From Octopus sinensis (taxonomy: Eukaryota), in NCBI RefSeq assembly GCF_006345805.1, contig NC_043017.1, positions 18,910,001-18,974,000 of the forward strand: a DNA stretch of 64,000 nt, written 5' to 3'. The notes beneath the pieces are model-generated. The model saw only the letters and a list, made by a program, of their open reading frames with translations, was not told the DNA's origin and ran no database searches. Positions 565 to 21,005 of the stretch are shown piece after piece (within the stretch, counting starts at the first letter, position 1; each line of letters begins with the position of its first letter). Made by a program: the position numbers and the translations under genes.

Positions 565-1680
565 ATGGAAAATACATTATGTGAAAATCCATTTACACTT
601 CAGGCAGAGTCTGAAAATATGAATTTTGCAAATGAAATGCCAAAAGAGACAGGAAAAAAGTCAAATGAGTGTGATATCTGTGGTAAATCATTTGCACGCA
701 GAAACTATTTAACTGCTCACAAACGTATTCATACAGGGGAGAAGCCACATCAGTGTAATATATGTGGTAGAGCTTTTATTTCAACTGGTCACTTAACTAC
801 TCATATACGTACACATACAGGAGAGAGGCCTTATCACTGTGATATCTGTGGTAAATCATATGCTCGTAGTAATCAGTTAACTGTACATAAATACATTCAT
901 ACAGGAGGTCAGCCATGCCATTGTGATATCTGTGGTAAATCTATGCCTTCAAAGAGTAAATTAACAGTACACAAACGCTTTCATACTGGAGAGAAACCAT
1001 TTCACTGTGATATTTGTGGTAAATCTTTCTCTATTAGTAGTCACTTAACTACACACAAATATATGCATACAGGAGAGAAGCCATATCACTGTGATATCTG
1101 TGGTAAATCATTCTCTGTAGGAAGTAACCTAAATACTCACAAACGACTTCATACAGGAGAAAAGCCATACCACTGTGATATCTGTGGGAAAACATTATCC
1201 GATCAAGGTAACTTAAATAGTCACAAACGTACTCATACAGGTGAGAAAAGATACCTTTGTGATATTTGTGGTAAATCGTTCTCTGATAGTAGGTCTTTAA
1301 CTGCACACAAACGCAGTCACACTGGAGAAAAGCCATATCACTGTGAAATCTGTGGTAAATCATTTGCAACCACACGTACAGTAACTGTTCATGAACATAT
1401 TCATACAAGAGACAAGTCATATTCGTGCAATATCTGTGGTAAGTCATTTCCTCGTAGTGAATCATTATTTATTCACAAGCGTATACATACAGGTGAGAAG
1501 CCATATCGCTGTGATATCTGTGGTAAATCATTCACAATATCAACCACAATATCAACTACTTTGACTACACACAAATGTAGACATACAGGGGAGAAACCAT
1601 ATCACTGTGATATCTGTGGTAAAGCATTTTCTCAAAAACGTCACTTCACTGCCCATACATCTACTCATACAGGAAAATAA
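565..1680 (+). CDS. C2H2 zinc-finger protein (ZNF1 here), 371 aa, 12 finger units, no effector domain
   Basis: Intact ORF of tandem C-x2-C-x12-H-x3-H units with TGEKP linkers. Conserved acceptor TTTCAG at 324-325; exon 1 lies upstream of the window. Finger 11 carries a 4-aa insertion. Confidence 0.95.
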
Positions 1681-3805
1681 CTGTGTCAATATATGTTGTG
1701 CTGTAAAAAAATACCTAACCATAAATGTATTCACAGAGGGAGTTAGACAGAGCTATCTTTCTAGAGTAAATAGTTCACGTAACTACATTTAATATCTACT
1801 TGCCTGTATGATTATAATAAAAGTATTGTTTCAGAAAATAGTCATATGTATATTGTAGCTAACATATATGTGCCGAGAGATGACGAGATACAATAAATTT
1901 ACTGGATATTGTGTAAATAACTGAGAAATGAGTTCTTATAAATCACAAATGACATCACTGTACTGTTTAATTAGAAATAAAATTATGAACTATAAAAGAA
2001 AATATTTCGTTATACCATATCGGGATGTAAGTATGATGTCTTACAAAGAATCTTTGCCCTTTATACATTTAATCATGTATATACTCCAACAAATTATCAA
2101 AAATAATGAGCTTCAACAAAGAATTTCTATAGAAGGTAATTGTTTGTGTTGGCCTTAAAGTATCTTTAGTGTTTCTATATAATCTATCTTTTCTACATTA
2201 ATTCGTGCATCTGTTCTATGTTCAGTGTGAAATATTATGTACTTATCTCAATAATGGAATAGTTCATGATTTAAATAATAAAATAAAGCTAATTAAATCT
2301 ATTTCCTTGACCCGAGTTGACTGACTCTTACTTCCTAGACATTTACCTTCCAACTGATATTCTATCATTGATCACTCTTCCATCTCTGTTCTCCATTCAC
2401 TGCATTTATCTCTTTCTCCATCTCTATCCAGCTGCTACTCTTCTTTCACTCTTGCATACATTCCTACAGATTCATCCTATCCATTTCTCTGTGCCATTCC
2501 TCTTATATTGCGCTTCCTATAACCTGACAGATCTGACATCTTCACCACCATCTTGCTTTTGTAATTGGAGTAACCATTTGTCTACCCTACTGCAAGACAC
2601 CTATCCCACATTTAAGGGTTCTTGTCTCTTGAGGTATATTGTGACAATATAAAATCATCCATGTACACTCTTTATAATGGTTGTTGTTATGAAGGGTATC
2701 TGGCTGTAGAAACAATGCCAGAGCTTGGCACTATCCTCTGGTTCAACAGCTTCTTTCAAACCATCCAATTCATGTCAACATGTAAATGAGATGTTAGATG
2801 ATGAGTATTTCAGCAAAATAATAAACATTATGGATCTTCAACAAAGAATTGAAACATATAAATCTGGAGAGAGTGTTGGGATAAAATATTAGTACCCTGT
2901 GTTGATGTAGGGAGATTTGGTTACTATTTCTTGCATATTGTTATTCCTCTTTGAGGTCCATCATTTATAGTGTGAGCTAAGAATTGTCTGTTAGCTGTTT
3001 AGCATGTATCAACGCATGCACACAGAGGAAGGAAATGTATTTAAAAAGTTTCATATGTCTGAATGGAGTGAAGGAAGAGGCTTTGGAAAAAAAGTATTTG
3101 AAACAATTTTTTTTTTTTTTGTCCAGAATTGAAATCGTCTGCACATGGAATTACAAAATACAGAAATAAAGACTTGTGAGGTGACAGTGGGAATTGAAAT
3201 TTCAAAATGCTTTTGTTTTATTTATTGACATAATCATAAATTTTAATATTGAAAATAAGAATCCTAACTGCAAGGGCAAATGTCTTCTATAATTGCAGGC
3301 CAAATGGATTTGATAAATGAAACTGAAAGTGGCTTTTGTATATATGCGTTTGAGGCTTAACAGTCGCTGAAATTACATAGAATTAGCAAAATTTAAAAGC
3401 TACTAAGTTATTATTAATTTAATTAGTATATAAAATTGAAGCAAATATGAAAACAATTGGAACAAAGTTTTAAAAAAATAGAAAACTGTGTCAGCAACAG
3501 AAAAGATCTGGATTCCTTTTGATTTGCAATTTAATTTTCTTCATTATTTATTTCTTGGGGAGGGGAAATGAGTGCGATTTCTATCATCAGCCTGTAAAAC
3601 CACATTTTCTGGAGATTTGATTGACTAATGGGGTTTGGTTGAAATTTAACATCAGAGCCACTAGAAGCAGATGCAAGAAACAACTAAAACATATCGACGA
3701 CGATCGTTGAAGTTGGCTTCATTATCGGTGTTACAACATACGAAGACATTAAATCGCTGTCTTTCATCTGATTAGCATCTCATTCCGCTCCTAACATTCT
3801 ACCAA

Positions 3806-4054
3806 TGCGCATGATTAACCGGAAGTTGACTTCGACGGTCACTCATAAGATCTCAGCTTTGTATTTCTAATTAAATCGCATATAAGATAATTTACTAGCT
3901 TGACGCATAAAACGGTGAGGAAGTAATCATATCTATCTCATATCTTATAATGAATTTATCTATAATATTATACATTGTATATACGTAATGGGAGTAATTT
4001 CAGCATCCCGACCATCGTCACTGATTTACTCATTATAGCTGTGATTCATTCGAG
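3806..4054 (+). promoter_or_regulatory. ZNF2 core promoter motif (NRF1-like TGCGCATG + ETS CCGGAAGT) and non-coding exon 1
   Basis: TGCGCATG at 3806, CCGGAAGT at 3819, donor GAG|GTATTT at 4054/4055. The same module recurs before other ZNFs. Confidence 0.75.
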
Positions 4055-4263
4055 GTATTTTTGTTGATTCTTTTCTCATTCAAACGTCGTTTCTACTTTC
4101 ACAACGCAATGTTTCTATTTGATTGATCTGTCATATACTTCGCGACATTCTTGAAAACAATCAGTCTTTGAAACACAAGTTAGCACTGACGTAGCCATAT
4201 AAACAACAACATATCATTTTTCAGGCCAGAGAACTGCCACCGTCCACTATTGTGTATTCACCA

Positions 4264-4560
4264 TATTGGGCTGGAAAAAAAGTTCGTACCGTTTCTAAGT
4301 AAAATTCAAAAACAATATTTTGATACTTGTGCATTTCTATATTTGACCATATGTCCCATTTTGTTCCTCTATCTTTCGTCCTTATTGTGTAAGCTTCATG
4401 AGCATAACTTCCCTTTGCATCTTTTGGAGCCATGAACTGTATTAAGTTGTTTTTACAGTCTTCCAAACAATTGCAGTTCTTCCCCTTAATGTAATTTCGA
4501 TAACAATCGAAATGATGGTTATCCGAAGGTGCTAGATTAGGCGATTATAGTGGATTTGGT
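4264..4560 (-). mobile_element. Mariner transposon 3' fragment with one TIR
   Basis: The minus strand encodes a degenerate YSPDLAPSDYHLF motif (SPNLAPSDNHHF) and a mariner-like C-terminus. TIR-like TATTGGGCTGGAAAAAAAGTTCGTACCG at 4264. Partly retained at 9050-9110. Confidence 0.65.
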
Positions 4561-5629
4561 AGTTGGTCCCCGCCAAACTATATCAATTTCTACCATCTGT
4601 AGGGAAATATGGTACCACTAGCGAACAGTGTTCCCGGTGCGCGCACTCGTGCATCCGCGCTAGTTAGTTAACGGGTGTTGAGGTTTACTGCTCGGATTCT
4701 GTACGGTTGATCGTATGAATTTTCTGAGCCCCCTCCCCACCCATCCGTTTATAAGCGCGCATTTTTTTCTTAATATTTGTTGAATATACATTGCATTAGA
4801 AGTATTAGACGATTTCTGTTTCACTCCTGTGACCGGGTGTTGAGGTTTACTGCTCGGATTCTGTACGGTTGATCGTGTGAATTTTCCGAGATCCTCCCCG
4901 GGTGCGGATCTACATATTAACTGTTATATTTGTTTCCATTAAATTATTAGGCACCAAAATATAGAAGTTCACATACCGAAATATTCATTTGAAAAATGTG
5001 AATCTCAGTGATGTCTTGTATTTGTGTGGTCTTGGCTATTATCAAAGACTGAAGTTCTGCTGGAATGTTCATGGTGTCCCTGATCAAAATTTTCAGGTCT
5101 CAGCCAGGCGAACCACATACAAACAGTCGCTATAGATTTCTATATGTGTAGCCATCAAACAAGATTGTACGATGTAGTTATAAGAATTAAAATTTAACTT
5201 CAAATGTTGATGTAAATGCTTATATTTACATTTCTATTTATTAACATAGAAATGTAAATTTTCCATCGTTGAGCCTCTACTTTTAAACAATCCCTATATC
5301 TTATACTATTTCTCTACTATTTCAGAAATAACAGATGGTATTGGCGTAGAAGAATTTATTTACTTCAGATTCGTCATCAATATTTCTCATCATTTAAAGA
5401 CTAAAGAATGATGTTATTCCAAATAGAAATGATTGGTGGAATGACTGAAATATTTCTTGTGAACTGAGATTATTATATTATTAACATTCTAATTTTTTCT
5501 TTCACTATCTGGAATATATTCAAGAGTGAGTTTCTGCCATCAACAGATATCAATAAACATTGAATGTGATGGAAATTTTAAAGTAGAAAATATGAATAAA
5601 ACATAGCAATTAGTGAGAAAAGAACAGTA

Positions 5630-6811
5630 ATGGAAAATACATCACGGGAGACCCCAATTAAAACAGAGTCTGAAAGCATTGATTTTCCTGATGAGATGCT
5701 GAAGGTGATGAAAAAAACATCATACCAGTGTGGTATCTGTGGTAAATCATATTCTGAAAGAGGAACATTAACTAAACACAAACGTATTCATACGGGAGAG
5801 AAACTATATCAGTGTAATATCTGTGGTAAAGCATTCATTTCAAGTAATTACTTAACTATTCATATACGTACACATACAGGAGAGAAGCCTTATCAGTGTG
5901 ATATCTGTGGTAAAGCATTTGCTCACAGTTCTCATTTAAAAGTCCATAAATACATTCATACAGGAGGTCAGCCATGCCATTGTGATATCTGTGGTAAATC
6001 TATGTCTTCAAAGAGTAAATTAACAGTACACAAACGCTTTCATACTGGAGAGAAACCATTTCAGTGTGATATTTGTGGTAAATCATTCTCCATTAGTAGT
6101 CACCTAACTACACACAAATATATGCATACAGGAGAGAAGCCATATCACTGTGATATCTGTGGTAAATCATTCTCTGTAGGAAGTAACCTAAATACTCACA
6201 AACGACTTCATACAGGAGAAAAACCATTTCACTGTGAAATCTGTGGCAAAACATTATCTGATCAAGGCAACTTAACTAGTCACAAACGTATTCATACAGG
6301 TGAGAAACGATACCTCTGTGATACTTGTGGTAAATCATTCTCTGATAGTAGGTCTTTGACTGCGCACAAACGCAATCACACTGGAGAAAAGCCATATCAC
6401 TGTGAAATCTGTGGTAAAGCGTTCAGCACCACACGTCAAGTAACTATTCACCAACACATTCATACAGGAGACAAGTCATATTCATGTGATATTTGTGGTA
6501 AGTCATTTCCTCGTAGTGAATCATTATTTGTTCACAAACGCATACATACAGGTGAGAAGCCATACCACTGTGATATTTGTGGTAAATCATTCACAGTATC
6601 AACTACTTTGACTACACACAAACGTAGTCATACAGGAGAGAAACCATATCACTGTGATACCTGTGATAAATCATTCACTACAACAAGTTACCTAACTAAG
6701 CACAAACTCATTCACAGGCGAGATATGCCATATCACTGTGATATCTGTGGTAAAACATTTTCTCAAAAACGTCACTTCACTGCTCATACATCTACTCATA
6801 CAGGAAAATAA
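5630..6811 (+). CDS. C2H2 zinc-finger protein (ZNF2), 393 aa, 13 fingers; hybrid of ZNF3-like 5' part and ZNF1-like 3' part
   Basis: Intact ORF. Inferred intron 4055-5325 (GAG|GTATTT ... TTTCAG|AAAT). N-terminus and fingers 1-3 match ZNF3; fingers 6-end and the 3' flank match ZNF1. Confidence 0.95.
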   Translation: MENTSRETPIKTESESIDFPDEMLKVMKKTSYQCGICGKSYSERGTLTKHKRIHTGEKLYQCNICGKAFISSNYLTIHIRTHTGEKPYQCDICGKAFAHSSHLKVHKYIHTGGQPCHCDICGKSMSSKSKLTVHKRFHTGEKPFQCDICGKSFSISSHLTTHKYMHTGEKPYHCDICGKSFSVGSNLNTHKRLHTGEKPFHCEICGKTLSDQGNLTSHKRIHTGEKRYLCDTCGKSFSDSRSLTAHKRNHTGEKPYHCEICGKAFSTTRQVTIHQHIHTGDKSYSCDICGKSFPRSESLFVHKRIHTGEKPYHCDICGKSFTVSTTLTTHKRSHTGEKPYHCDTCDKSFTTTSYLTKHKLIHRRDMPYHCDICGKTFSQKRHFTAHTSTHTGK

Positions 6812-8086
6812 CTGTGTCACTGTAAAAAATACCTAACCATAAATGTATTCACAGGAGTTAGACAGAGCTATCTTTCTAGAGTAAATAGTTCATGTAACTA
6901 CATTTAATATCTACTTGCCTGTATGATTATAATAAAAGTATTGTTTCAGAAAATAGTCATATGTATATTGTAGCTACCATATATGTCCCGAGAGATGACA
7001 AGATACAATAAATTTATTGGATATTGTGTAAATAACTGAGAAATGAGTTCTTATAAATCACAAATGACATCACTGTACAGTTTAATTAAAAATAAAATTA
7101 TGAACTATAAAAGAAAATATTTCATTATACCATATCGGGATGTAAGTATGATGTCTTACAAAGAATCTTTGCCCTTTATACATTTAATCATGTATATACT
7201 CCAACAAATTATCAAAAATAATGAGCTTCAACAAAGAATTTCTATAGAAGGTAATTGTTTGTGTTGGCCTTAAAGTATCTTTGGTGTTTCTATATAATCT
7301 ATCTTTCCTACATTAATTTGTGCGTCTGTTCTATGTTCAGTGTCAAATATTATGTACTTATCTCAATAATGGAATAGTTCATGATTTAAATAATAAAATA
7401 AAGCTAATTAAATCTATTTCCTTGACCCGAGTTGACTGACTCTTACTTCCTAGACATTTACCTTCCAACTGATATTCTATCATTGATTACTCTTCCATCT
7501 CTGTTCTCCATTCACTGCATTTATCTCTTTCTCCATCTCTATCCAGCTGCTACTCTTCTTTCACTCTTGCATACTTTCCTACAGATTCATCCTATCCATT
7601 TCTCTGTGCCATTCCTCTTATATTGTGCATCCTATAACCTGACAGATCTAACATCTTCACCACCATCTTGCTTTTGTAATTGGAGTAACCATTTGTCTAC
7701 CCTACTGCAAGACACCTATCCCACAGTTAAGGGTTCTTGTCTCTTGAGGTATGTTGTGACAATATAAAATCATCCATGTACACTCTTTATAGTGGTTGTT
7801 ATGAAGGGTATCTGGCTGTAGAAACAATGCCCTTGGCACTATCCTCTGATTCACCAGACGCTTTCAAACCATCTAATAAACATTATGGATATTCAACAAA
7901 GAATTGAAACACATGAATCTGGAGAAAGTGTTGGGATCAGATTAGTGTCTGTTATGGAGAGAGAAAAAAAAAAACTGGAGGAAAAAGTTTCAGAAGTTTA
8001 AAAATCGAAAAAACAGGGTATCTTTAGCCATTAGTGAGACAGTAAAATTTAACACCTGAACCACTAGAAGCAGATGCAAGAAACAC

Positions 8087-8434
8087 CTGTGTGAAAAGTC
8101 TGGCTGCATCCGAAAAAATATATATTATGAAACAAAAATCAACACAAAATTTATTACACGAATCTGTTACCACCACGACAGTCAACTATTTGACGCCGAA
8201 CACGAGTTTGATGTTGAATACATGCACGAATTTTCCGCTCAGATAGTTCTTCCCAAGACGGCTTCGTGCAATTCATGCCTCGGTGTAGGGTATTTCAGTT
8301 CAACTTTATCGGCCAAAACTAAAGTTAATAATGATTCTGCTAATTCCACGTGTAAACATGTGTTGAATACAACTCACTGAATAAATCTTAATTAACTGTG
8401 TTGTGAATTGTATGCAGCCAGACTTTTCACACAG
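8087..8434. mobile_element. MITE of about 350 bp with perfect 23-bp TIRs
   Basis: CTGTGTGAAAAGTCTGGCTGCAT (8087-8109) and its reverse complement (8412-8434); absent at the paralogous site near 3685. Confidence 0.88.
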
Positions 8435-8538
8435 AGGATACAACATATCGACGACGTTCGAACTTGCGAACACTCTTAATCGGTATTTTGGGTAGTCGTG
8501 TGTGATTTCGTCTGTTTAGCATCCGAACATTCTACCAA

Positions 8539-8853
8539 TGCGCATGATCAACAGGAAGTTAACTTCGGCGGTCACTCATAAGATCCCAGCTTTGTATTTC
8601 TAATTGAATCGCGTATGTCTATATTATAATAAATAATAATAATAATGAAATTATTGTATAGAGTGCTCAGGTGCACCACAACAAGCTAATATATTAGCAT
8701 GACGCATAAAGCGGTGAAGAAGTAATCATATCTATCTCGTATCTTATAATGAATTTATCTATAATATTATACATTGTATATACGTAATGGGAGTAATTTC
8801 AGCATCCCGACCATCGTCACTGATTTGCTCATTATAGCTGTGATTCATACGAA
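8539..8853 (+). promoter_or_regulatory. ZNF3 promoter motif and exon 1
   Basis: TGCGCATG at 8539, CAGGAAGT at 8552, donor GAA|GTATTT; paralogous to 3806-4054. Confidence 0.72.
8626..8682 (-). mobile_element. Very short 3'-tail copy of the CR1/L2-group LINE seen at 41792
   Basis: (AAT)n-GAAATTATTGTATAxAGTGCTCAGGTGCACCACAAC matches 41795-41848; absent from ZNF2 exon 1. Confidence 0.85.
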
Positions 8854-9290
8854 GTATTTTTGTTGATTCTTTTCTCATTCAAACGTCGTTTCTACTTTCA
8901 CAACGCAATGTTTCTATTTGATTGATCTGTCATATACTTCGCGACATTCTTGAAAACAATCAGTCTTTGAAACACAAGTTAGCACTGACGTAGCCATATA
9001 AACAACAACATATCACTTTTCAGGCCAGAGAACCGCCACCGTCTACTATTGTGCATTTCTATATTTGACCATATGTCCCATTTTGTTCCTCTATCTTTCG
9101 TGTGTCAGCTTCATGGACATAGATAGGTGCAGACGTGGCTGTGTAGTAAGAAGATAGCTTGCGAACGACGTCGTTCCAAGTTCAATTACACTGCGTAGCA
9201 CCTTGGCAATGACCAAGGCCTTGTGAGTCAATTTGTGAGACAGGAACTGGAAAAGGCTCGTCGTATACAGATACGTATATATATGTATTC

Positions 9291-10285
9291 ATTTAGAGAT
9301 AGTAGGCCCCTTCATCTCACCATATAAAAAAGAATTTTTATTTTAAATACCTACTGTTTTATAACTTGGCTACACGTGTTTCATGAGGTACATTTCCCGG
9401 TTCCTAAACCACTCCGTGTTTTGCTGGAACCCTTCTTAAAATGTAACCCCAATCATCAGGCCCTTATATCATTTTATCATCGTTCAATACTCATCATCAT
9501 CATCATTTAGCGTCCGCTTTCCATGCTAGCATAGGTTGGACGGTTCAACTGGGGTGTGGGAGGCCAGAAGGCTGCACCAGGCCCAGTCTGATCTGGCAAT
9601 GTTTCTACGACTGGATGCCCTTCCTAACGCCAACCTCTCCGTGAGTGCAGTGGGTGCTTTTTACGTGCCACCGGCACAGGTGCCAGACGGGGCTGGTAAA
9701 CGGTCACGGTCGGATGGTGCTTTTTACGTGCCACCGGCACGGGGGCCAGGCGAGGCTGGCAACAGCCACGGTCGAATGGTGCTTTTTACGTGCCATAAAC
9801 TATATTTTAATTTTTTTAAACCCATAAGTATGTGTAAAAATAGGTACGTGTAAATTAGGTTCGCTGGACCCTACAGTACAAGCCATAATTCAGATAAAAA
9901 TTCAAATGAAAAATTATAAAAATAAAATATTTTTTTTCGCCTTTTTATTTCTTAATTTATTTTTGTAATATTTTTGAATTTTTATCTAAATTATGGCTTG
10001 TACTGTAGTGTCCAGCGAACCTAATTTACACGTACCCATTTTTACACATACTTACGGGTTTTAAAAAATAAAAATATAGTTTATAGTATTGAACGATGAT
10101 AAAATGATATAAGGGCCTGATGATTGGGGTTACATTTTAAGAAGAGTTCCAGCAAAACACGGAGTGGTTTAGGAACCGGGAAATGTACCTCATGAAACAA
10201 GTGTAGCCAAGTTATAAAACAGTAGGTACTTAAAATAAAAATTCTTTTTTATATGGTGAGATGAAGGGGCCAACTATCTCTAAAT
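9291..10285. mobile_element. Foldback/hairpin element (~315-bp arms, ~60-bp spacer) with a retroposon inserted in the left arm
   Basis: 9291-9491 plus 9796-9910 is the reverse complement of 9971-10285, with few mismatches. Confidence 0.9.
9492..9795 (-). mobile_element. RTE-LINE 3'-tail element with (GAT)n tail
   Basis: (CAT)nTTAGCGTCCG...GTGCCACCGGCAC family; the same sequence forms the 3' end of the RTE copy at 29318-30240. Confidence 0.85.
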
Positions 10286-10844
10286 AAAATAGACATTTCT
10301 TCATTGACAATATATATATATATATATATATATAGATCAACATGTAATTTTACATAATTACCGTGTGTTGCTATAGTTTGTATATATGTAACCATGAAAC
10401 AAGATTGCACGATGTAGTTATAAGAATTAAAATTTAACTTCAATCGTTTATTTCTATTTATTAACATAGAAATGTAAATTTTCCACCGTTGAGCCTCTAC
10501 TTTTAAACAATCCCTATATCTTATACTATTTCTCTGCTGTTTCAGAAATAACAGATGGTATTGGCGTAGAAGAATTTATTTACTTCAGATTCGTCATCAA
10601 TATTTCTCATCATTTAAAGAATGATGTTATTCCAAATAGAAATGATTGGTGGGATGACTGTGAAATATTTCTTGTGAACTGAGATTATTATATTATTAAC
10701 ATTCTAATTTTTTCTTTCACTATCTGGAATATATTCAAGAGTGAGTTTCTGCCATCAACAGATATCAATAAACATTGAATGTGATGGAAATTTTAAAGTA
10801 GAAAATATGAATAAAACATAGCAATTAGTGAGAAAAGAACAGTA

Positions 10845-12194
10845 ATGGAAAATACATTACGGGAGACCCCAATTAAAACAGAGTCTGAAAGCATTGATTT
10901 TCCTGATGAGATGCTGAAGGTGATGAAAAAAACATCATACCAGTGTGGTATCTGTGGTAAATCATATTCTGAAAGAGGAACATTAACTAAACACAAACGT
11001 ATTCATACAGGAGAGAAACCATATCAGTGTAATATCTGTGGTAAAGCATTCATTTCAAGTAGTTACTTAACTATCCATATACGTACTCATACAGGAGAGA
11101 AACCATATCACTGTGATATTTGTGGTAAAGCATTCGCTCACAGTACCCACTTAAGTGTCCATAAATACATTCATACAGGAGGGCAGCCATACCATTGTGA
11201 TATCTGTGGTAAATCTATGTCTTCAAAGAGTAAATTAACAGTACACAAACGCTTTCATACTGGAGAGAAGCCATTTCAGTGTGATATCTGTGGTAAAACG
11301 TTTTCTATAAGTAGTCATTTAACAACTCACAAATATATGCATACAGGAGGGCAGCCATATCACTGTGATATCTGTGGTAAATCATTCTCTGCAAATAGCC
11401 AATTAACTATACACAAACGCATTCATACAGGAGAAAGGCCGTATCACTGTGATATCTGTGGCAAACCATTGTCTGACCCACGTAACTTAAATAGTCACAA
11501 ACGTATTCATACTGGAGAGAAACGATATCTCTGTGATATTTGCGGTAAATCATTTTCTCACAGTGGACATTTAACTGCTCACAAATGCATTCATACAGGA
11601 GAAAAGCCATATCCCTGTGAAATCTGCGGTAAATCATACTCTATCAAAAGTGAATTAACAGTTCACAAACGCATTCATACCGGAGACAAACCTTATTCCT
11701 GTGACATCTGTGGCAAGTCATTTCCTCGTAGAGAGACGTTACCTATCCACAAGCGTATTCATACAGGTGAGAAGCCATATCACTGTGATATTTGTGGTAA
11801 ATCATTCACAATATCAAATAACTTAACTATCCACAAACGCAGTCATACAGGAGAGAAACCATACTGTTGTGATATCTGTGGTAAATCATTTACTACAACA
11901 AGTGGTTTAACAACACACAAATACATTCACACAGGAGTGAAACCTTATCACTGTGATATCTGTGGTAAATCATTCACTGTTACAAGTAACTTAACTACAC
12001 ATAAACACATTCACACAGGAGAGAAACCATATCACTGTGATGTTTGTGGTAAATCCTTCACTTCAACAAGTAACTTAACTAAACACAAACGCATTCACAC
12101 ACGAGATATGCCATATCATTGTAATATCTGTCGTACATCATTTTCTCAGAAACGTCACTTAATGGCACATGTGTCTATTCATTCAGAAGAATAA
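10845..12194 (+). CDS. C2H2 zinc-finger protein (ZNF3), 449 aa, 15 fingers
   Basis: Intact ORF. Inferred intron 8854-10545 (donor variant GAA|GTATTT). Confidence 0.95.
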   Translation: MENTLRETPIKTESESIDFPDEMLKVMKKTSYQCGICGKSYSERGTLTKHKRIHTGEKPYQCNICGKAFISSSYLTIHIRTHTGEKPYHCDICGKAFAHSTHLSVHKYIHTGGQPYHCDICGKSMSSKSKLTVHKRFHTGEKPFQCDICGKTFSISSHLTTHKYMHTGGQPYHCDICGKSFSANSQLTIHKRIHTGERPYHCDICGKPLSDPRNLNSHKRIHTGEKRYLCDICGKSFSHSGHLTAHKCIHTGEKPYPCEICGKSYSIKSELTVHKRIHTGDKPYSCDICGKSFPRRETLPIHKRIHTGEKPYHCDICGKSFTISNNLTIHKRSHTGEKPYCCDICGKSFTTTSGLTTHKYIHTGVKPYHCDICGKSFTVTSNLTTHKHIHTGEKPYHCDVCGKSFTSTSNLTKHKRIHTRDMPYHCNICRTSFSQKRHLMAHVSIHSEE

Positions 12195-13859: not shown

Positions 13860-15300
13860 AGTACAGTTGTTGGTTGGATAGGAAAACCAACCAATGGTAG
13901 CCCATAATCCTGCTAAGTATCCTGGTACCAAAGGAGTTCAGGCAGCCTCTAAGTCCTCTTGATAAGTCTCACAATTGTAGAGGAAAGCAAGGAGGATCAG
14001 GGACCGGAAGACTTGAACCTCTCTTGCTTAGATATTGGCAGAGCCAATCATCCTTGTCCATTGAATTCACAACTGCACCAGTACGCCAAAGTCTTTTACA
14101 AATGTTGTACTCACAGTTAATGCTACTATGGATCATGCTACTGAGATAAGTGGTTCAATAACTTTCACATTCTCAACTACAGTAGAGAGACATTATGGAG
14201 TCCTCAGGAAACCAACAAAGTTTGGATCTTTGTTCTGACCTAAGAAATTCTGAGGGCCAGTGGTTCCACTCCATTCACTTAGTGAAAGAAGAGCACTCCT
14301 TAAGACATTCAGAGATTCAGCAAAATCCAGTTCAGTAACGTTGGTTTAACAAATGAGCACTCCACAACTGAATCGAGCCAACATACAGCCAGTTATCCAG
14401 TCAATACAGGCATTGAACAGAGTGGAAGACAAAACACATCTCATGAATTTACCTGGACTTTGCATTGCTGGCTCCAGCTAACCAATGTCCTGAGCTGCAT
14501 TGGTAGACTTACTATTCAAATATTTATCATGTGGCAAAGGAAATGAACTATGTGCTTGTAGATGGGCAGAAGAGGGTCCTACAGAGCTGCAGGATATTTT
14601 AGAATGCTAGCTTCATATGCACTAACCATAGGTTTGTTGTGGCTGAGTTGAGAAAAGGACTGAAGTCTTAGAGGCAGCCAGTCTCGGATTGAATGTCAAC
14701 AAACACAAAGACAACGGTGTAAGCAAGACTGATTTACAGCAGCTTGAAGCCGGTCCCTTGGTCGGACTTGTGGGAAACATATAGGGAGACCTAGCAGTCA
14801 ACTGCTAGGGAGTGTATTGGATTCCAAAAACGGCCAGGAAACATTTCCTCTCCAGAAAGACCTTATTGATGGAGTACAGCTGCAACGCAAGGCTAAGTGG
14901 GCTCCCAGGTGATTTGCTTCTGGGGCTGAGATGGGGAGAATTCAGAGCACTGAAGTTTGACATGGAAAAGCTGGTTCAATGAAACTGAGGAGGCCAAGCT
15001 TCACACCTGACTCACTGCCTACAGAGGGATTCCAGTGCTTTTGAGGGGCAAATTTTCCTCGTTTTTTAATTTTTTTTTTTAGTTTTAGACACTGATGGAA
15101 CACTCCTGACAGAGGAGCCCAAGATGGTCACTTGTTGGGCATTGTACACTAAAGGGTTGCATTAACTGGATTCACCTAAACCTACCAGTCAGCTGTGATC
15201 TGTCATCCATAGATGAGGTTCATATGGTGGTAAGTCAGCTGAGGAGCAGGAAGGTACCTGGAATTTGTAGCATCCACTTTGTGCACGATGGTGAAAGTTA
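13860..15300. mobile_element. Degenerate RTE-type LINE with an internal inversion
   Basis: The minus strand at 13860-14400 gives RT motifs (PTLFNAC, TELDFA, VFRSL...LYNCET). The plus strand at 14400-15300 gives the endonuclease end and RT start (VAKEMNYVLVD...HRFVVAELR; IDEV...LRSRKVPGIC). Confidence 0.7.
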
Positions 15301-15416
15301 GCTTCTTTAACAGTCTCACAACGTGCAAAAGCCTATATCAATGACTTCAAGTATATATAGCATCTCTGTGCACCTTTATCTATAAACACCTCACTCATTT
15401 CGCCAATATTCAGCAA

Positions 15417-15647
15417 TGCGCATGTTTAACCGGAAGTTGAATTCAGACTCTAAACAAAGTGTTTGAACACGAAGTAATAATAATATTATATCCTATGTTT
15501 TAATATATTTATCTCCAGCCTCTTTCTCTCTCTCTCTCTATGTATGTATATACATACATATACAGGCACACGCAGTGGAAGTAATTTTCTGTTCAGCAAC
15601 ACGACCACCGTCTTTAACTTACTAATCATAGTTTTCATTCATATGAG
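15417..15647 (+). promoter_or_regulatory. ZNF4 promoter motif and exon 1
   Basis: TGCGCATG at 15417, CCGGAAGT at 15430, donor GAG|GTATTT at 15647/15648. Confidence 0.72.
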
Positions 15648-15814
15648 GTATTTTCTTTTATTGAATTTTCACATTTAAAGGTCGTTTCTACTTGTCATCC
15701 ACCATTGAGTAGTTTAAGATATCATTTTCAGATATCATGAAAGAGTGAAGTTGAAAGAGATTTGTTCAAAGAAAATAAGGATAAAATATATGAATTGGTG
15801 AGAGCGGAACCATT

Positions 15815-17002
15815 ATGGAAAATACATTAAGTGAGACACCAATTACGATTAAGACAGCGATTGAAAGCATTGATATTTCTGACGCGATGTCAAAAGAGAT
15901 GAGAAAAACTTCAAACCACTGTGACATCTGTGGTAAATCATTTTCTCTAAAGAAATCTTTAACTGCTCACAAACGTATTCATACAGGAGTGAAGCCATAT
16001 CAGTGTAATATCTGTGGTAAAGCTTTTTATCGAAGTACTTACTTAACTATTCACATACGCACTCATACAGGAGAGAAGCCTTATGACTGTGATGTCTGTG
16101 GCAAATCATTTGCTCGAAGTCATCAGTTGACTGTACATAAATACATTCACACAGGAGGACAACCTTGTCATTGTGATATCTGTGGTAAATCTATGTCTTC
16201 AAAGAGTAAATTAACAGTACACAAACGATTTCATACTGGGGAGAAGCCATTTCAGTGTGATATTTGTGGTAAATCATACTCTATTAGTAGTCATTTAACA
16301 TCTCACAAATATTTTCATACAGGAGAGCAACCATATCACTGTGATATTTGTGGTAAATCTTTCTCAGCAAATAGTCAGTTAACAATACACAAACGCATTC
16401 ATACAGGAGAAAAGCCATATCATTGTGATATCTGTGGTAAATCATTGTCTGACCCACGTAACTTGAGTAGTCATAAACGTGTTCATACAGGAGAAAAACG
16501 ATATCTTTGTGATGTCTGTGGTAAATCATTCTCTCGAGGTGGACATTTAACAGCTCACAAATGCACTCACACAGGAATGAAGCCACATGCCTGTGATATC
16601 TGTGGTAAATCATTCTCTACAAGTCCTGAATTAACTGCTCACATACGCATTCACACAGGAGACAAGCCTTATTCATGTGATATCTGTGACAAGTCATTTT
16701 CTCGTAGAGAAGCATTATCTGCTCACAAACGAATTCATACTGGTGAGAAGCCATATCACTGTGATATCTGTGGTAAATCATTCACGACATCAACTAACTT
16801 AACTAAACACAAACGCAGTCATACAGGGGAGAAGCCATACTGTTGCGATATCTGTGGTAAATCATATACTACAAGAAATAGCTTAACTGCACACAAACAC
16901 ATTCACACAGGAAAGAAACCATATCACTGTGATGTCTGTGGGACATCATTTTCTCAGAAACGCAGCTTAAAGATGCACGTTTGTATTCATTCAGAAGAAT
17001 AA
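15815..17002 (+). CDS. C2H2 zinc-finger protein (ZNF4), 395 aa, 13 fingers
   Basis: Intact ORF. Promoter motif at 15417, donor at 15648, candidate acceptor at 15730-15731 (84-nt intron). Confidence 0.95.
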
Positions 17003-18079
17003 CTGTCAGCGTATGAAGTTATGCGATGAAGAAATACCTACTCATACATGTATTCACAGAAGAAGGTAGACACGACTATCTTTCATGACTGAATTCAGTT
17101 TGATATTTTTAGTAAAAGTAATTTCAGAATATACTTCTGTATTTTGTAGCTTAAAATATTTCCTGGGGTAAGCAACAGTAGATTTATTGGACACTGTGGG
17201 TAAATAACTGAGAAGTGTATTATACATCTTCAGTAGCCACTCTGTACAGGTATTATGTTTGAATGTGGTGCAGCAAAATCTGGATGGATGGATAGGCCAC
17301 ACCTTAAGAAAACCCAAATCATCCTAACCTGAAATCTTCAAAGGCTGGTTATGAAAAAATAAGGATCCATCTGGCAAGAAGAAACTATTTCATACCCCCT
17401 TTGGAATATAAGTATGATGTCTTATTTATAGTCTTTGTTTTCTATATATTCTTTCATGTATATACTTCAGCAAATTAACAAAAGTAATGACTTCAACAAT
17501 TTCTGTCGGATAGCTTTTTGGTGAACCTGACAGTAGTTTTGGTGTTTGTACATTATCTTCTCTATATTCATTCATGTATCTATTCTATATCCTGTGAAAA
17601 ATGTTACGTATTTTTCTGAATGTTTCATGTTTTAGATAATAAAATAAAAACTTATTAATATGTCTTGGTATCAACTTTGTAAAAACATATTCGTTCTATT
17701 GTATAATCCTACAAAAAAAAAAAAAAAGTAATGATCATCAACAAGGTATTTCTATCACAGATATTTTTGTTATGGACCAAAAAGTATTTCTGATGCTGAT
17801 TTCAAAACCTTCATTTTCACAGTAGCATGTATGATTTTTGTGACAAAATTCATTTTTTAATGATTATAATTGAAATATTTTTTGCTCATACTATTGCTAT
17901 TTTAATAATGTCTTGTAATTATAAAAGTCATCTTGACATTTTCTTTTGTGTTTGTGGTACTAAGGCACACTAGTGAACTGTTGCAACAGATCTTATGAAA
18001 TATTCCAGATTTGATTTTGTTAGTGGCCACCACATTGAATCTATTCTGCCTGTTCAAATAGAGACTACATAACTGATTA

Positions 18080-18620
18080 TAAGGACAAGAAAGGTAATCA
18101 GTATCATATCTACTTCTCTCCCTAAGGAGCATAGGCCATCTCATTTTTCTCCACTATTCTCAGTTCTGGGCTGTCTTTTCTGCTTCTATCCAGTTAGATC
18201 TCTATTTTTTCAGGTATATCTCAGTATCCCATCTCCTTTGTTGGTTGTAGGTCAGGGCCTGATATGTAATGCAAGATGTTAGTGGCCTTAAGGTATGGCT
18301 TAGCCATCCTTTCAGGTTTTGCTGCACCATTTCATATGTTGTCCCGAGGAAAAGCCTTCCTGTTCCAGATTATGGTGTTTTGAATTGTCATTGATGTTTT
18401 TGTAATTTTACATTTTTCAAGGTAGAGATGTTGGCCCTAATCAAACACATTTTTATCTCTGGGAAGAGTGTGTCCGTTATTATTCTATCTGTTTTCCATT
18501 GACCTGTTCAGCATGAGGCCATGCCAGAAGCTTATGCTCTGCTGGTATAGCTCTCTGTGTCACTGAGGCACAGAAGCCTTCACACCACATCAAAGACTGG
18601 ACCTTGTGGTGGGAAAATCA
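18080..18620 (-). mobile_element. Old RTE-type LINE C-terminal/3' fragment
   Basis: Degenerate W..HTLR...ITYQALTYNQQ motif resembling RTE C-termini. Confidence 0.5.
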
Positions 18621-18849
18621 TCATAGTGTCTGCTAATTGTGTAATTTTAACATAATTGAATGTGTCTGTTTAAATGTATATTCTGCATGTTGACCAAGGT
18701 GACATGATGGCCCCAATGCTCATTTCCTTACCCTCATGTGATGGATTAACTTTTAAATATGAGGAAATGGAGGTTAATGAATGTACAATTAGTGGAGGTT
18801 TTTTAATGGTCCTCAATTACATATTTGAAGAAAATATGGAGCCTAGGTT

Positions 18850-19345
18850 ATTTATTGTTGAGCATTTTATGTTGGCAGAGCTTCTCACTTGAAAGAAGGT
18901 AACTGACTTGACCAAAGTGTACAAGTGAGTCATTATCCAAAATAGAAAATTAAATTTGGCAACATGCTTTGCAGCAGATGGTTCACTCTGCTATTACAAT
19001 GACATCAGTGTTCACAGAGTTGTCTCATTCTTCTAGAGCCTCTTTGATTTGATTCATCACAAGCTTGAAAGCAGCTCTGCAGCATAATGGTCACATCATG
19101 CCATACACCCCTGTTGCTCACTTTGTTCATCTAAATATGATGCAATAACATGGATATACTGCTTGATACCATTCAATATCATATTCAATGGAATCTCAGT
19201 GCCATCAAAATGTCCATAACTTTCATGTGTAATATACAAGTCCTAGCATTGTTTACATTACCACCAGAATATCAATGCTAACCTTTGTTTACACATTAAT
19301 GGCTACATAAACCAAGGACAACAACTTGGGATATGTACAAGTGAG
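18850..19345 (+). mobile_element. Degenerate DNA-transposase fragment, Chapaev3-like (CMC superfamily)
   Basis: Frameshifted AELL..LKE.NLLD; LCYYNDI; LFD.SSQSLKAALQHNG..P..P.AHFVHL; GQQLGY. This matches the remembered EWRLFIDSS..SLKAVLLHNGN signature; the family name is from memory. Confidence 0.55.
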
Positions 19346-21005
19346 ACTAGATTTGATAGATTAGTGGACCATTGCATGTTCCTTTGTCTCAATTTCAATT
19401 CGGTTTCTATATTGGATTACCTTCCTAATACTAACCACTTAACAGTGTACTGAGTGCATTTTTTTTCATGGCACCAGCACTCAAGAGGATGTTTTGCTCT
19501 CAACAAATTCTTAAGTCCCCTCAAACCTGACTTTGTCTTTGCTCAATCCACCAAACACTTTACAATGTACTTAGGGCATTTTTTCATGGATCCAGCCCTA
19601 ATGAGGTCATCTTGTAACTCACAGGGCAAAAGAACCTCCACCAAAAGAAAAAAGAGTAATAACTTTAGGGGAAGTTTTAGAAATTACAGTATGATGGTAT
19701 TAAGGAGATGTACTTGCATAGCAAGTTATCTGATCTGAGATTGTGTGCTGGAACGAAAACAATTGCAGCGTGCAAGGTGTTTATAAGCCATTTAAGAAAA
19801 ACACAAAAACCGTTAGATTCACTTCAACATTTAAGTCAAAATATTTTCATCACTTTGAGACCGTGACCTGTTCACTGACAAAATTCCGTGCTGCATCTGA
19901 GAAAGTAAGTTAGTTCATGATATATAGGTACGTATGTATGTATGTGTGTGTACATGTATATGTATGTGTGCATGCCTATACGCATGTATGTATGTGAGTA
20001 TTTAGGTAAGTGTGTACACATGTATATACATAAGATATGATGTCACTAAAGAGGGATAGATTATTTCCTTCCGTTTAGTGGTATGTGAAAACATGTAGGT
20101 AATTACAAACGTGTGTGTATGTAGTATAGAACTGGTCAATACTGAAAGCAATGCCATCTTAATTCCCTATGAAGAAATAAACTGGAGACAGACTTAAGTG
20201 TGTGGGTGTGTCTAAGAGTATCGACTCTTTTATCTCTGGTAACAAAAAAATCTAGGTACTCGAGAAAAACGTGGTTTCTGCAGAGTGTTGATAGGGCAAT
20301 AAATGGTGTTGGGGTTGAGGCATGAAAGAACTGAATGGTTTGAAATGGAGTCAAAGTAAGTTGTAGACTTAGCACACAAAGTACGACACGGGATGAACGA
20401 AGTCATGTCGCCTCTATGTTACACAAACAGTGATCGATTAAATGCCCTAACACACACCTCGTCTTTGTCACTGAGTACATATAGCTTTCCTTTACCATCA
20501 AGAATTACTGCTAGATGATGTTTCTCCAACAGTTGCTGTCGAGCTCGACAATTAGTTCTCTCTGCCGCGATAATTTGTCTGCTTTCCTCTACCAATCACT
20601 TTCAACCTAGAAATGTCTTTGTCAACCAATGTAGGAAGTCATAAACTGAGGCCATCTTCACCTGCTAACGTACTGCATTTTTTCCATATTATTTTGAATA
20701 CTTTTGCAAACGTAGATTTGTCCACACATGCTCTTTCTCCATCTCATTCTTTCACTCTGACTGACTACTATACATTTTATAAGAAACATTTTGAAGGAAT
20801 AAATGCATTTTAATTGGATTTATGTAGTGTTGTAATGTTTATTCAGCAATTTCACGTAACAACAACCAACTACACTACTACACAGTCATTGGACTCTCAG
20901 AGTCAGTGGAATCTCTGAACAATGGACTGAGAATAATTGGGGATATGTAAAAAATAGACTTGGTTAAAATAACTGGAGCGAAACTTGAAATGTAAGTGCA
21001 TAAAA

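Follow-up and report, generated by a model that had tools for sequence, protein, structure and literature searches.

Anti-Lepore hybrid genes arise by unequal crossing-over of misaligned tandem paralogues and lie between both parents, with the promoter and 5′ part of the downstream paralogue joined to the 3′ part of the upstream one; they are the duplication product of such exchanges and Lepore genes the deletion product (PMC4041002). The octopus zinc-finger gene ZNF2 resembles these hybrids in layout and in proposed origin, and its configuration is the anti-Lepore (duplication) form. An earlier, sequence-only reading had named it Lepore-type, which does not hold since its 5′ part comes from the downstream gene and both parents are present. 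Misaligned crossover of this kind has haemoglobin Lepore, an HBD/HBB deletion fusion, as its reciprocal product. There the upstream gene supplies the 5′ part and the downstream gene the 3′ part, and the deletion replaces both parents, whereas ZNF2 has the opposite polarity and its parents are kept. In an anti-Lepore-like case in dolphin, as in ZNF2, conversion before or after the crossover can complicate the mosaic. Unlike the anti-Lepore hybrids, ZNF2 belongs to an array of at least five zinc-finger genes made of internal 84-nt repeats; moreover, copy-number gain is here a proposal, and layers of different age indicate further exchange.

Tandem C2H2/KRAB clusters, such as the human chromosome 19 KZNF genes and the cephalopod C2H2 expansions (Albertin 2015; PMC12513265; PMC10547256), share with the octopus array local duplication, gain and loss of fingers, and recognition helices that diverge fastest. 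The octopus genes differ from KZNF clusters in their domains, as C2H2 was the only Pfam domain in ZNF1-4 and KRAB, SCAN and BTB were not found. Mispaired recombination is an ordinary route of growth for such gene families, of which ZNF2 is a new example; in the literature on cephalopod and tandem C2H2 expansions, we found no description of this chimera or of the contrast between its homogenised spacers and old core.

The zinc-finger array

The window, a 64-kb stretch of Octopus sinensis DNA (CM016879.1:18,910,001-18,974,000), lies within a C2H2 zinc-finger cluster. Its four intact C2H2 ORFs, all on the + strand, are members of one tandem array with a period of ~5 kb, and a fifth member, ZNF0, is found 5 kb upstream of the window. 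ZNF4 was the outgroup for comparisons of ZNF1-3, and F1-F11 share an 84-nt register.

565-1680, + strand: ZNF1, 371 aa, 12 fingers; the upstream, "A-type" parent
5630-6811, + strand: ZNF2, 393 aa, 13 fingers, all canonical C2H2, ORF intact; the chimeric gene
10845-12194, + strand: ZNF3, 449 aa, 15 fingers; the downstream, "B-type" parent
15815-17002, + strand: ZNF4, 395 aa, 13 fingers; next in the array

Finger 11 of ZNF1 contains a 12-nt tandem duplication (~1533-1556) resulting in C-X2-C-X16-H spacing, and ZNF1 lacks the RD(M/V)PY finger that ZNF0, ZNF2 and ZNF3 retain.

Chimerism of ZNF2

The chimerism of ZNF2 is genuine: it combines sequence of its neighbours, ZNF1 and ZNF3, with one topology switch. 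Nucleotide identity to ZNF3 is 98% in F1 and 94% in F2 (74% and 88% to ZNF1), F4 is 95-99% identical for all gene pairs, and in F5-F10 and the last finger ZNF2 is 95, 96, 92, 93, 85, 90 and 97% identical to ZNF1 and 86, 80, 87, 82, 75, 81 and 78% identical to ZNF3. Up to position 5944, 32 quartet-informative sites pair ZNF2 with ZNF3 (and ZNF1 with ZNF4) and one an alternative, while from 6055 onward 61 sites pair ZNF1 with ZNF2 (and ZNF3 with ZNF4), the other two topologies having 4 and 2. The maximum chi-square for the switch was matched in 0 of 20,000 permutations, and AU tests rejected both other topologies on the left (p ~5e-4) and on the right (p ~4e-6). Five-gene trees with ZNF0 added joined ZNF2 and ZNF3 on the left (100%), and ZNF1 and ZNF2 on the right (93%) within an A-type clade (100%). 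The site ratios (32:1 and 61:6) and AU tests bear out the claim of the sequence-only reading that ZNF2 is a fusion of ZNF3 and ZNF1; it had named in advance the absence of a topology switch along ZNF2 as one refutation, and since the switch is present, the claim is not refuted in this way. The origin of ZNF2 lies in non-allelic homologous exchange among adjacent members of the tandem array.

5945-6054, + strand: switch interval, F3 end and most of F4; last ZNF3-type site 5944, first ZNF1-type site 6055

The switch had been placed at ~5945-6110, and it does fall in the shared block, but in this narrower interval of 110 bp, nearly identical in ZNF1-3, within which the ZNF1-4 quartet has no informative sites. 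Divergence here is 0.9% for ZNF1-ZNF2, 1.8% for ZNF2-ZNF3 and 2.7% for ZNF1-ZNF3, compared with 16-18% in the next block, and the interval is conserved or homogenised family-wide.

The 5′ module, which groups with ZNF3, takes in F1-F2 and, ahead of them, the leader, intron, putative exon 1 and promoter-like block; F5-F11, the last finger and a 3′ flank of 1.2 kb group with ZNF1. Fingers 1-3 had been matched to ZNF3, which is right for F1-F2 but not for F3, with 88% identity to ZNF3 and ZNF1 and ZNF0 about equally distant. Similarly, the match of fingers 6-13 to ZNF1 was recovered for F5-F11 and the last finger but not for finger 12, whose best matches are ZNF3 F14 (85.7%) and ZNF0 F12 (86.9%). 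These identities are at paralogue level rather than that of a recent copy, so that the finger has been lost by ZNF1.

6650-6733, + strand: ZNF2 finger 12 with RRDMPY linker; no ZNF1 counterpart

As the sequence-only reading had it, the promoter, exon 1, UTR and leader of ZNF2 are ZNF3-like, the upstream promoter-like block, putative exon 1 and intron being a copy of those of ZNF3.

3797-4054, + strand: promoter-like block and putative non-coding exon 1 of ZNF2; copy at 8530-8853, upstream of ZNF3
5547-5629, + strand: putative 5′ UTR part of the ZNF2 coding exon, 3′ of a conserved CAG/ATATCA acceptor (5546/5547)

The promoter-like block of ZNF2 carries the motifs CCAAT, GCGCATG and CCGGAAGT at 3802-3827, and putative exon 1 ends with a GAG/GTATTT donor (4054/4055). 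The CAG/ATATCA motif recurs at 10761/10762 (ZNF3), 15731/15732 (ZNF4) and 508/509 (ZNF1), and related promoter/exon-1 blocks are seen upstream of ZNF4 (15428-15647), ZNF1 and ZNF0. The splice sites of ZNF1-4 are putative, as predicted from conservation. ZNF2 may be expressed and may bind a new combination of targets.

The repeated unit and its spacers

886-5944, + strand: ~5.1-kb repeated unit, copy 1, from the 3′ part of ZNF1 through spacer 1 to the 5′ part of ZNF2; BLAST chain collinear with copy 2
5945-11159, + strand: ~5.1-kb repeated unit, copy 2, from the 3′ part of ZNF2 through spacer 2 to the 5′ part of ZNF3; BLAST chain collinear with copy 1
6812-7942, + strand: ZNF2 3′ flank, paralogous to that of ZNF1 (1681-2887)

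In 150-nt windows, alignable non-coding sequence of the two copies is 95-100% identical and fingers F6-F10 are 89-94% identical. The ~1.1 kb 3′ of ZNF2 matches ZNF1, as previously noted: identity to the ZNF1 3′ flank (6812-7964 vs 1681-2915) is 96.2% over 1153 aligned sites (K2P 0.039). The upstream flanks of ZNF2 and ZNF3 (5126-5629 vs 10367-10844) are 97.3% identical and the spacer core (3884-4258 vs 8683-9057) 96.3%. The spacers, described earlier as duplicates, are indeed paralogous with 96-99% identity, but they align over only ~2.3 kb of each ~4 kb, the remainder being copy-specific indels, transposon insertions among them. With spacers 0 and 3 they have in common only the ~100-bp promoter/exon-1 block.

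Such similarity might reflect an assembly artefact, in which a real haplotype has two genes and the assembler passed twice, once per haplotype arm, round a cycle running from the F4 block through the A 3′ half, the spacer and the B 5′ half back to the F4 block. Duplicated BUSCOs are 5.2% in the O. sinensis assembly vs 0.5% in O. vulgaris, and octopus heterozygosity is ~1.2% (PMC10700109). Both the 1.5-4% non-coding divergence and the presence/absence of transposons are near the range of divergent alleles, and the near-identical F4 block is the type of repeat that permits such a loop. However, the 64-kb window has zero Ns, the ORFs of ZNF1-3 are all unbroken and in frame, the 64 kb shows no further recent duplication of like kind, and the finger cores differ by 10-13%, one whole finger and a 12-nt duplication, which is far above allelic divergence. 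We consider an artefact very improbable.

Age layers and the proposed history of exchange

5794-5846, + strand: right edge of the "young" tract against the "old" finger core, ZNF2-ZNF3 (LRT 24.4, 0 of 5000 permutations)
5847-5944, + strand: old ambiguous patch, F2 end and F3 recognition helix
6223-6637, + strand: old A-type finger core, F7-F11

Divergence between ZNF2 and ZNF3 is 1.7% from the upstream flank to mid-F2, with the first 68 nt of F1 identical, and 13.3% in 5847-5944. Between ZNF2 and ZNF1 it is 8.2% in F5-F11 and falls to 2.95% from 6638 onward, over the last finger and the adjoining 1.2 kb of 3′ flank, with a change-point at ~6638-6733 (LRT 22.3, 0 of 5000 permutations). Spacers and gene ends differ by 1.5-4% from their partners and the finger core by 10-13%. 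The old patch of ZNF2 has 13 differences per 98 nt from ZNF3, 14 from ZNF0 and 15 from ZNF1; three to four shared-derived non-synonymous sites tie it to ZNF3, which has ~8 changes of its own there (6 synonymous). In 6223-6565, divergence is near-star (ZNF1-ZNF2 10.8%, ZNF0-ZNF1 11.1%, ZNF0-ZNF2 12.5%). Block estimates of dS for the hybrid-parent pair vs ZNF0-ZNF1, from few sites (5-22 third-position differences each), are 0.16 and 0.15 in F1-2, 0.39 and 0.47 in F3, 0.107 and 0.105 in F4-6, and 0.33 and 0.39 in F7-10. The upstream flank K of ZNF0-ZNF1 (0.23) is near the dS of the pair (0.19-0.25); the flank K of ZNF2 is 0.015-0.04. The finger core of ZNF2 appears to be about as old as the ZNF0/ZNF1 split, with spacers and gene ends 5-10 times less diverged.

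A single age therefore does not fit both copies of the supposedly duplicated unit; one or more additional exchanges, or large local differences in rate, must be invoked. ZNF2 is not the frozen outcome of a single event, and the earlier claim of "exactly" the product of one unequal crossover fails because the two unit copies differ in age, at change-points reached in 0 of 5000 permutations each. As its parts are of different age, more than one exchange seems to have been involved.

A single recent unequal crossover in the F3-end/F4 block, duplicating a ~5.1-kb unit (flank K ~0.03), would explain the topology and the paralogous spacers most simply, and sequence on both sides of the switch is little diverged (1.7% to 5846, 2.4% in 6055-6222). 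F3 and F7-F11 would then have outpaced the neutral flanks several-fold in divergence, owing to diversifying selection, to small ectopic conversions from other zinc-finger paralogues, or to both. Consistent with this, differences are clustered (e.g. 13 within 49 nt of the F9 helix), the ZNF3-specific synonymous run at 5860-5976 resembles an imported patch, and at the matching finger index, other fingers carry the derived base about twice as often as a random one (0.19 vs 0.10). Yet no donor of the F3 patch was found within the window, and the synonymous rate of F7-F10 (dS 0.33) would have to be ~10x that of adjacent non-coding sequence (K 0.03). In the ZNF0-ZNF1 pair, dS matches flank K. Derived changes are evenly split between ZNF1 and ZNF2 (17:16), the codon-position bias (24:11:7) and omega of ~0.2 indicate long-term purifying selection, and per-finger identities in F2-F7 are closely alike for hybrid-parent and ZNF0-ZNF1. 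This makes a lone crossover distinctly unlikely.

Gene conversion alone, with gene number constant, would make ZNF2 a pre-existing third gene, of A-type and born in the burst that gave ZNF0 and ZNF1. One or two long register-shifted tracts from the neighbouring unit would then have overwritten its 5′ end, both spacers and the ZNF1 3′ end. The near-star A-type cores in F7-F10 agree with this, both edges of the "young" tract lie inside finger arrays, as expected of a conversion patch and not of a single crossover, and chimeras structurally like Lepore and anti-Lepore genes can come from conversion (PMC4041002). The F3 helix of ZNF2, however, is not A-type, being 14-15% from ZNF0 and ZNF1, themselves 7% apart; with the derived sites common with ZNF3, this suggests that a B-like segment was already in the old layer. 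Tracts of >4 kb through heterologous spacer are also unusual, and we regard this history as rather doubtful.

Instead, we favour two steps, with a probability of about one half. The first and older would be an unequal crossover within the conserved block of the F3 end and F4, yielding the hybrid and an extra gene copy, and a later exchange would have re-homogenised ~4.3 kb comprising the last finger, the spacer and F1/F2 of the next gene, either as a single long gene conversion or as a duplication-then-deletion pair of unequal crossovers. A left junction one finger out of register would also account for the missing finger 12 of ZNF1. This history is drawn from that absence together with the topology switch, the paralogous flanks, the age-layer change-points and the match of dS to ZNF0-ZNF1. 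The type, number and order of events and the copy-number gain are a proposal, as copy-number-changing crossover and gene conversion would both fit the sequence alone. Several points weigh against two steps: the old layer on the ZNF3 side is supported by just the three to four shared-derived F3-helix sites, the old patch is equidistant from A-type and B-type by raw distance, a 4.3-kb conversion tract is long, the block dS values come from few sites, and fingers with inherently different rates of change could produce the block pattern with no difference in age.

In the models of Innan and of Teshima and Innan, gene conversion reportedly homogenises duplicates save where selection keeps them apart. 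The ZNF2 locus is similar to such concerted evolution with escape, in that flanks and conserved blocks are near-identical and functionally different segments stay diverged, linked synonymous sites included. Omega is ~0.2 overall, however, and one late long exchange could give the pattern instead.

Spacer-specific elements

2916-3641, no strand assigned: spacer-1-only segment of 726 bp, inserted in spacer 1 or deleted from spacer 2
4407-5125, no strand assigned: spacer-1-only segment of 719 bp, missing from spacer 2
8087-8434, no strand assigned: MITE-like insertion with 21-23-bp terminal inverted repeats, spacer 2 only
9288-10288, no strand assigned: 1-kb element with 201-204-bp terminal inverted repeats (98% identical), spacer 2 only

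No second copy of the 726-bp segment was found within the 64-kb window. The MITE-like insertion has an uninterrupted counterpart site in spacer 1 (~3682-3690), and the interior of the 1-kb element (9487-9770) has 90% copies at 29959-30241 (- strand) and 33611-33881 (+ strand).

The zinc-finger gene array

The window (CM016879.1, 18,910,001-18,974,000) is part of the chromosome-scale Octopus sinensis assembly GCA_006345805.1 (Li et al. 2020; PMC10700109), is AT-rich (GC 32-45%) and has poly-C2H2 zinc-finger ORFs on both strands, at least nine in all. Cephalopod genomes are known to carry large tandem C2H2 expansions (PMC12513265, PMC10547256). Four of the ORFs, all intact, lie head to tail with a spacing of about 5 kb:

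565-1680, + strand, ZNF1 ORF, 12 fingers
5630-6811, + strand, ZNF2 ORF, 13 fingers by pattern
10845-12194, + strand, ZNF3 ORF, 15 fingers
15815-17002, + strand, ZNF4 ORF, 13 fingers

Each consists of a leader of 32-34 residues followed by fingers of 84 nt (F1, F2 and so on from the N-terminus), of which F1-F11 are in register across ZNF1-4, and finger count varies only beyond F11. ZNF2 fits the C2H2 poly-zinc-finger class, with tandem C-X2-C-X12-H-X3-H fingers and TGEKP-type linkers (Pfam PF00096, 228.7 bits over 11 stretches; PF13465, 310.7 bits), and its exact product is among the gene calls on CM016879.1 (34.1 Mb). Pfam identified zinc-finger models only, and no KRAB, SCAN or BTB domains, in the ORFs of ZNF1-4. 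An exact protein-cluster look-up found none of the four proteins. Protein searches with full-length ZNF2, its C-terminal region and its leader did not find the orthologous locus of O. vulgaris, O. bimaculoides or A. fangsiao; the matches to the first two queries were dominated by vertebrate poly-zinc-finger proteins, and the leader matched only a paralogue on another chromosome (52% identical).

A fifth array member, ZNF0, was found in the 10 kb upstream of ZNF1 and lies outside the window at -5084 to -3896 (4352-5540 of locus L002). It resembles ZNF1 along its entire length and retains the RDVPY finger. One extra A places the canonical ATG out of frame, and the ORF that remains, of 377 aa, begins at an internal Met; ZNF0 may be decaying, or an alternative start may be in use.

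Further coding features of the window are the following:

24017-24955, + strand, poly-C2H2 ORF
28198-28968, - strand, ORF with a retroviral-type integrase core domain (Pfam rve, E 2e-11)
35668-38214, - strand, poly-C2H2 ORF
43328-44737, - strand, poly-C2H2 ORF
51947-54343, + strand, poly-C2H2 ORF
59102-60883, + strand, poly-C2H2 ORF

These five zinc-finger ORFs belong to other subfamilies (about 72-78% nucleotide identity to ZNF1-4), and some of their fingers are degenerate. The integrase ORF is a retrotransposon fragment within the zinc-finger cluster. A public gene call with a 533-aa product starts at the ZNF3 ATG (window 10845 onward; 15216-21182 of locus L001) and extends beyond the end of that locus, which suggests an annotated isoform splicing ZNF3 to exons downstream.

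ZNF2 is a chimera of its neighbours

Per finger, ZNF2 is 98% identical to ZNF3 in F1 and 94% in F2, and 85-97% identical to ZNF1 in F5-F10 and the last finger, while F4 is 95-99% identical for every pair among ZNF1-4. The same change of relationship is seen at parsimony-informative quartet sites.

Parsimony-informative quartet sites of ZNF1-4 (Z1-Z4) supporting each split
Up to 5944: Z2,Z3 against Z1,Z4, 32; Z1,Z2 against Z3,Z4, 1; third split, 0
5945-6054: Z2,Z3 against Z1,Z4, 0; Z1,Z2 against Z3,Z4, 0; third split, 0
From 6055: Z2,Z3 against Z1,Z4, 4; Z1,Z2 against Z3,Z4, 61; third split, 2

The maximum chi-square of the switch was reached in none of 20000 permutations, and likelihood AU tests rejected both other topologies on each side (p about 5e-4 left, 4e-6 right). 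With ZNF0 included, the left-hand five-gene tree groups (Z0,Z1) and (Z2,Z3), each at 100%, and the right-hand tree sets Z0 plus (Z1,Z2), the latter pair at 93%, against (Z3,Z4), at 100%. There is one topology switch, and it falls in 5945-6054, a block common to both parents, where ZNF1 and ZNF3 differ by 2.7% compared with 16-18% in the next block. The sequence-only reading had proposed that ZNF2 is a chimera of its neighbours, flanked by them in the order parent, hybrid, parent (ZNF1-ZNF2-ZNF3), and that it arose by homologous exchange between neighbouring genes. These proposals hold. Informative sites are at 32:1 for ZNF3 on the left and 61:6 for ZNF1 on the right, with AU tests and five-gene trees in agreement.

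Two additional events were considered and rejected. The four-taxon pairings of ZNF4 merely complement those of ZNF2, and ZNF4 is therefore not needed as a second, reciprocal recombinant. A second, ZNF3-derived switch at finger 12 was dismissed since F12 of ZNF2 is only 85.7% identical to F14 of ZNF3 and similarly close (86.9%) to F12 of ZNF0; it is thus an ancestral A-type (ZNF0/ZNF1-like) finger lost by ZNF1, and no recent ZNF3 insert. The RD(M/V)PY finger is kept by ZNF0, ZNF2 and ZNF3, and is missing from ZNF1 alone of these.

ZNF2 joins the 5' part of the downstream paralogue to the 3' part of the upstream paralogue, and both parents flank it in their original order; this is an anti-Lepore duplication configuration. 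Lepore denotes the reciprocal deletion product, of opposite polarity (PMC4041002), in which the 5' part comes from the upstream gene, the 3' part from the downstream gene and the parents are replaced, whereas ZNF2 has the reverse polarity and its parents are present. Its description as a "Lepore-type" fusion is therefore abandoned. Structurally similar chimeras may also result from interparalogue conversion, with copy number unchanged (PMC4041002).

In ZNF2, non-allelic exchange at a conserved finger has combined the 5' module of one gene with the neighbouring gene's finger array; the resulting gene is intact and has its recognition helices in a new order. Globins, opsins and vertebrate zinc-finger clusters offer well-known examples of chimera formation by exchange, and cephalopod genomes are noted for very large lineage-specific C2H2 zinc-finger expansions, the diversification of which is, to our knowledge, poorly described. 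The locus represents a clean, base-resolved case of C2H2 diversification in cephalopods. As the mechanism is textbook, it is a useful illustration and no discovery of a new kind.

Flanks and spacers

The 1.2 kb 3' of ZNF2 are 96.2% identical to the 1.2 kb 3' of ZNF1, and the 0.5 kb 5' of ZNF2 are 97.3% identical to the 0.5 kb 5' of ZNF3. The spacers on either side of ZNF2 (spacer 1, ZNF1-ZNF2; spacer 2, ZNF2-ZNF3) had been described as duplicates, which is correct for the alignable part, about 2.3 of about 4 kb each at 96-99% identity, and incorrect for the remainder, which consists of copy-specific insertions or deletions. Two segments of about 720 bp are unique to spacer 1, and two elements are found in spacer 2 only:

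8087-8434, MITE-like element with 23-bp inverted ends; empty site seen in spacer 1
9288-10288, 1-kb element with 201-bp inverted ends

The next spacers upstream and downstream (spacers 0 and 3) have only a conserved block of ~100 bp in common with spacers 1 and 2. First BLAST identities of 85-89% in long hits, suggestive of an old duplication, were discarded, as these HSPs were one finger out of register or spanned both halves of ZNF2; in-register alignments of the flanks gave 96-99% instead. Constraint as the cause of low flank divergence is ruled out by the K of 0.23 in the homologous ZNF0-ZNF1 upstream flank and by the near-complete lack of similarity of spacers 0 and 3 to spacers 1 and 2.

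Upstream of every array gene, 0.1-1.9 kb from the ATG, is a conserved block that ends 3' in GAG|GTATTT, with CCAAT/GCGCATG/CCGGAAGT motifs seen for ZNF2, ZNF3 and ZNF4; a CAG|ATATCA about 85 nt 5' of the ATG is also conserved. From conservation alone, we read the former as a putative promoter and non-coding exon 1 and the latter as a putative coding-exon acceptor. The block is 96-98% identical between spacers 1 and 2. A 78% copy of the block upstream of ZNF0-4 is present at 27302-27448, with the retroelement fragment directly downstream and no family coding exon nearby after it, and could represent an orphaned first exon.

Copies of a dispersed repeat family (81-90% identical) lie at 9487-9770, 29959-30241 (- strand), 33611-33881 (+ strand) and L002 9142-9295; one is the inner part of the 1-kb inverted-repeat element of spacer 2, and another is directly upstream of ZNF1. 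Of the (AT)n microsatellites (10310-10337, 42310-42333, 58479-58501, 61729-61796), one adjoins the unaligned part of spacer 2.

The finger core and its less diverged flanks

ZNF2 had been taken for exactly the product of one unequal crossover. Such an event would leave two evenly diverged unit copies (886-5944 and 5945-11159), with coding sequence diverged no more than the neutral flanks, and this is not what is observed.

Divergence of ZNF2 from its parents on either side of two change-points
Upstream flank to mid-F2, from ZNF3: 1.7%
5847-5944, from ZNF3: 13.3%
F5-F11, from ZNF1: 8.2%
Last finger and 3' flank, from ZNF1: 2.95%

Each change-point was matched in 0 of 5000 permutations, and dS in the core (0.33-0.39) far exceeds K in the flanks (0.015-0.04); the single-event account does not hold. 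The low-divergence tract has its boundaries at about 5794-5846 and 6638-6733, both within finger arrays.

Nearest relative of ZNF2, block by block (divergence)
5126-5846: ZNF3, 1.5-1.7%
5847-5944: ambiguous (ZNF3 13.3%, ZNF0 14.3%, ZNF1 15.3%; 3-4 shared-derived sites with ZNF3)
5945-6054: ZNF1 0.9%, ZNF3 1.8%
6055-6222: ZNF1, 2.4%
6223-6565: ZNF1, 10.8%
6650-6733: finger 12, without counterpart in ZNF1
6734-7942: ZNF1, about 3%

The ZNF1-ZNF2 core excess is mostly synonymous (24 of 42 differences in F4-F10 fall on third codon positions), both halves of ZNF2 have an omega of about 0.2, and derived changes in the F4-F10 comparison are divided 17:16 between ZNF1 and ZNF2.

dS per finger block, hybrid against parent and, as an independent pair, ZNF0 against ZNF1
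F1-2: 0.16; 0.15
F3: 0.39; 0.47
F4-6: 0.107; 0.105
F7-10: 0.33; 0.39

In the ZNF0-ZNF1 pair, the K of the upstream flank matches the mean dS (0.19-0.25), and the ZNF2 flanks are 5-10 times less diverged than that flank. Two readings follow: the age of the ZNF2 core equals that of the ZNF0/ZNF1 split, with a later renewal of its flanks, or certain fingers evolve far faster than neutral DNA. One recent unequal crossover followed by fast-evolving fingers would be the simplest account of the topology and of the low divergence on either side of the switch, and some clustered differences resemble imported patches (the F9 helix; a synonymous run in ZNF3, 5860-5976), but it requires a roughly tenfold synonymous acceleration that is absent from the ZNF0-ZNF1 pair, and we consider it improbable. 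Positive selection as the sole cause of fast fingers is unsupported, given an omega of about 0.2 and an excess of divergence that is for the most part synonymous. In a test of ectopic conversion on the four genes, derived bases were about twofold enriched at the same finger index of other fingers (0.19 vs 0.10), and no donor for the F3 patch was found in the window.

Synonymous divergence differs three- to four-fold among finger blocks (F4-F6 about 0.1; F3 and F7-F10 about 0.33-0.47), a pattern that recurs in ZNF0-ZNF1, ZNF1-ZNF2 and ZNF2-ZNF3 (6055-6565 and the ZNF0/ZNF1 equivalents).

Proposed history of ZNF2

The history that we favour, with a probability of about 0.5, is a crossover followed by a later exchange. 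An older unequal crossover within the conserved block of F3-end and F4 would have produced the hybrid and a third gene. A later exchange would then have renewed about 4.3 kb, extending from the last finger across the spacer into F1/F2 of the following gene, with boundaries near 6638-6733 and 5794-5846; it could have been a single long conversion or, equally, a duplication followed by deletion through unequal crossing-over, with the same outcome. A left junction misaligned by one finger, if there was one, would account for the absence of the RD(M/V)PY finger from ZNF1. Since the hybrid arose, ZNF1 has become one finger shorter and has acquired a 12-nt duplication.

Gene conversion only, with gene number unchanged, would fit a young tract bounded at both ends in finger arrays, as in a conversion patch, and the near-star formed by the A-type cores; it leaves the B-like (ZNF3-like) F3 helix in the old layer unexplained and seems unlikely to us. 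An assembly loop through the F4 repeat, joining two haplotype arms, has to be considered in an assembly with 5.2% duplicated BUSCOs and an octopus heterozygosity of about 1.2% (PMC10700109), but is very improbable given the core divergence of 10-13%, the whole-finger difference between copies, the intact reading frames and a window without Ns.

Unexpectedly, the spacers and gene ends look several-fold younger than the finger core, and old finger cores inside young homogenised flanks add modest interest to the locus. The age structure suggests that exchange (concerted evolution) is ongoing in the array and cautions against dating such duplications by flanks alone or by coding sequence alone. 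Tentatively, spacer and regulatory DNA and gene ends might be repeatedly homogenised between array neighbours while finger cores escape, the promoter and N-terminal fingers being moved as a cassette onto older finger arrays. If true across the roughly 1,800 octopus C2H2 genes, this would be a specific route to new finger combinations and altered regulation of tandem duplicates.

Finger 4 and finger 11

Across ZNF0-4, the end of F3 and finger 4, which has Met where Phe is usual, show 93-99% nucleotide identity (5945-6061 and homologous positions). This identity includes synonymous sites (neighbouring fingers, 75-90%) and points to constraint at the nucleotide level or repeated conversion; the block is thus likely to be a substrate of exchange as well as a product of it.

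F11 of ZNF1 carries a 12-nt tandem duplication at 1533-1556 (ATATCAACCACA / ATATCAACTACT), which lengthens its Cys-His spacing to 16 residues, and this finger is probably non-functional.
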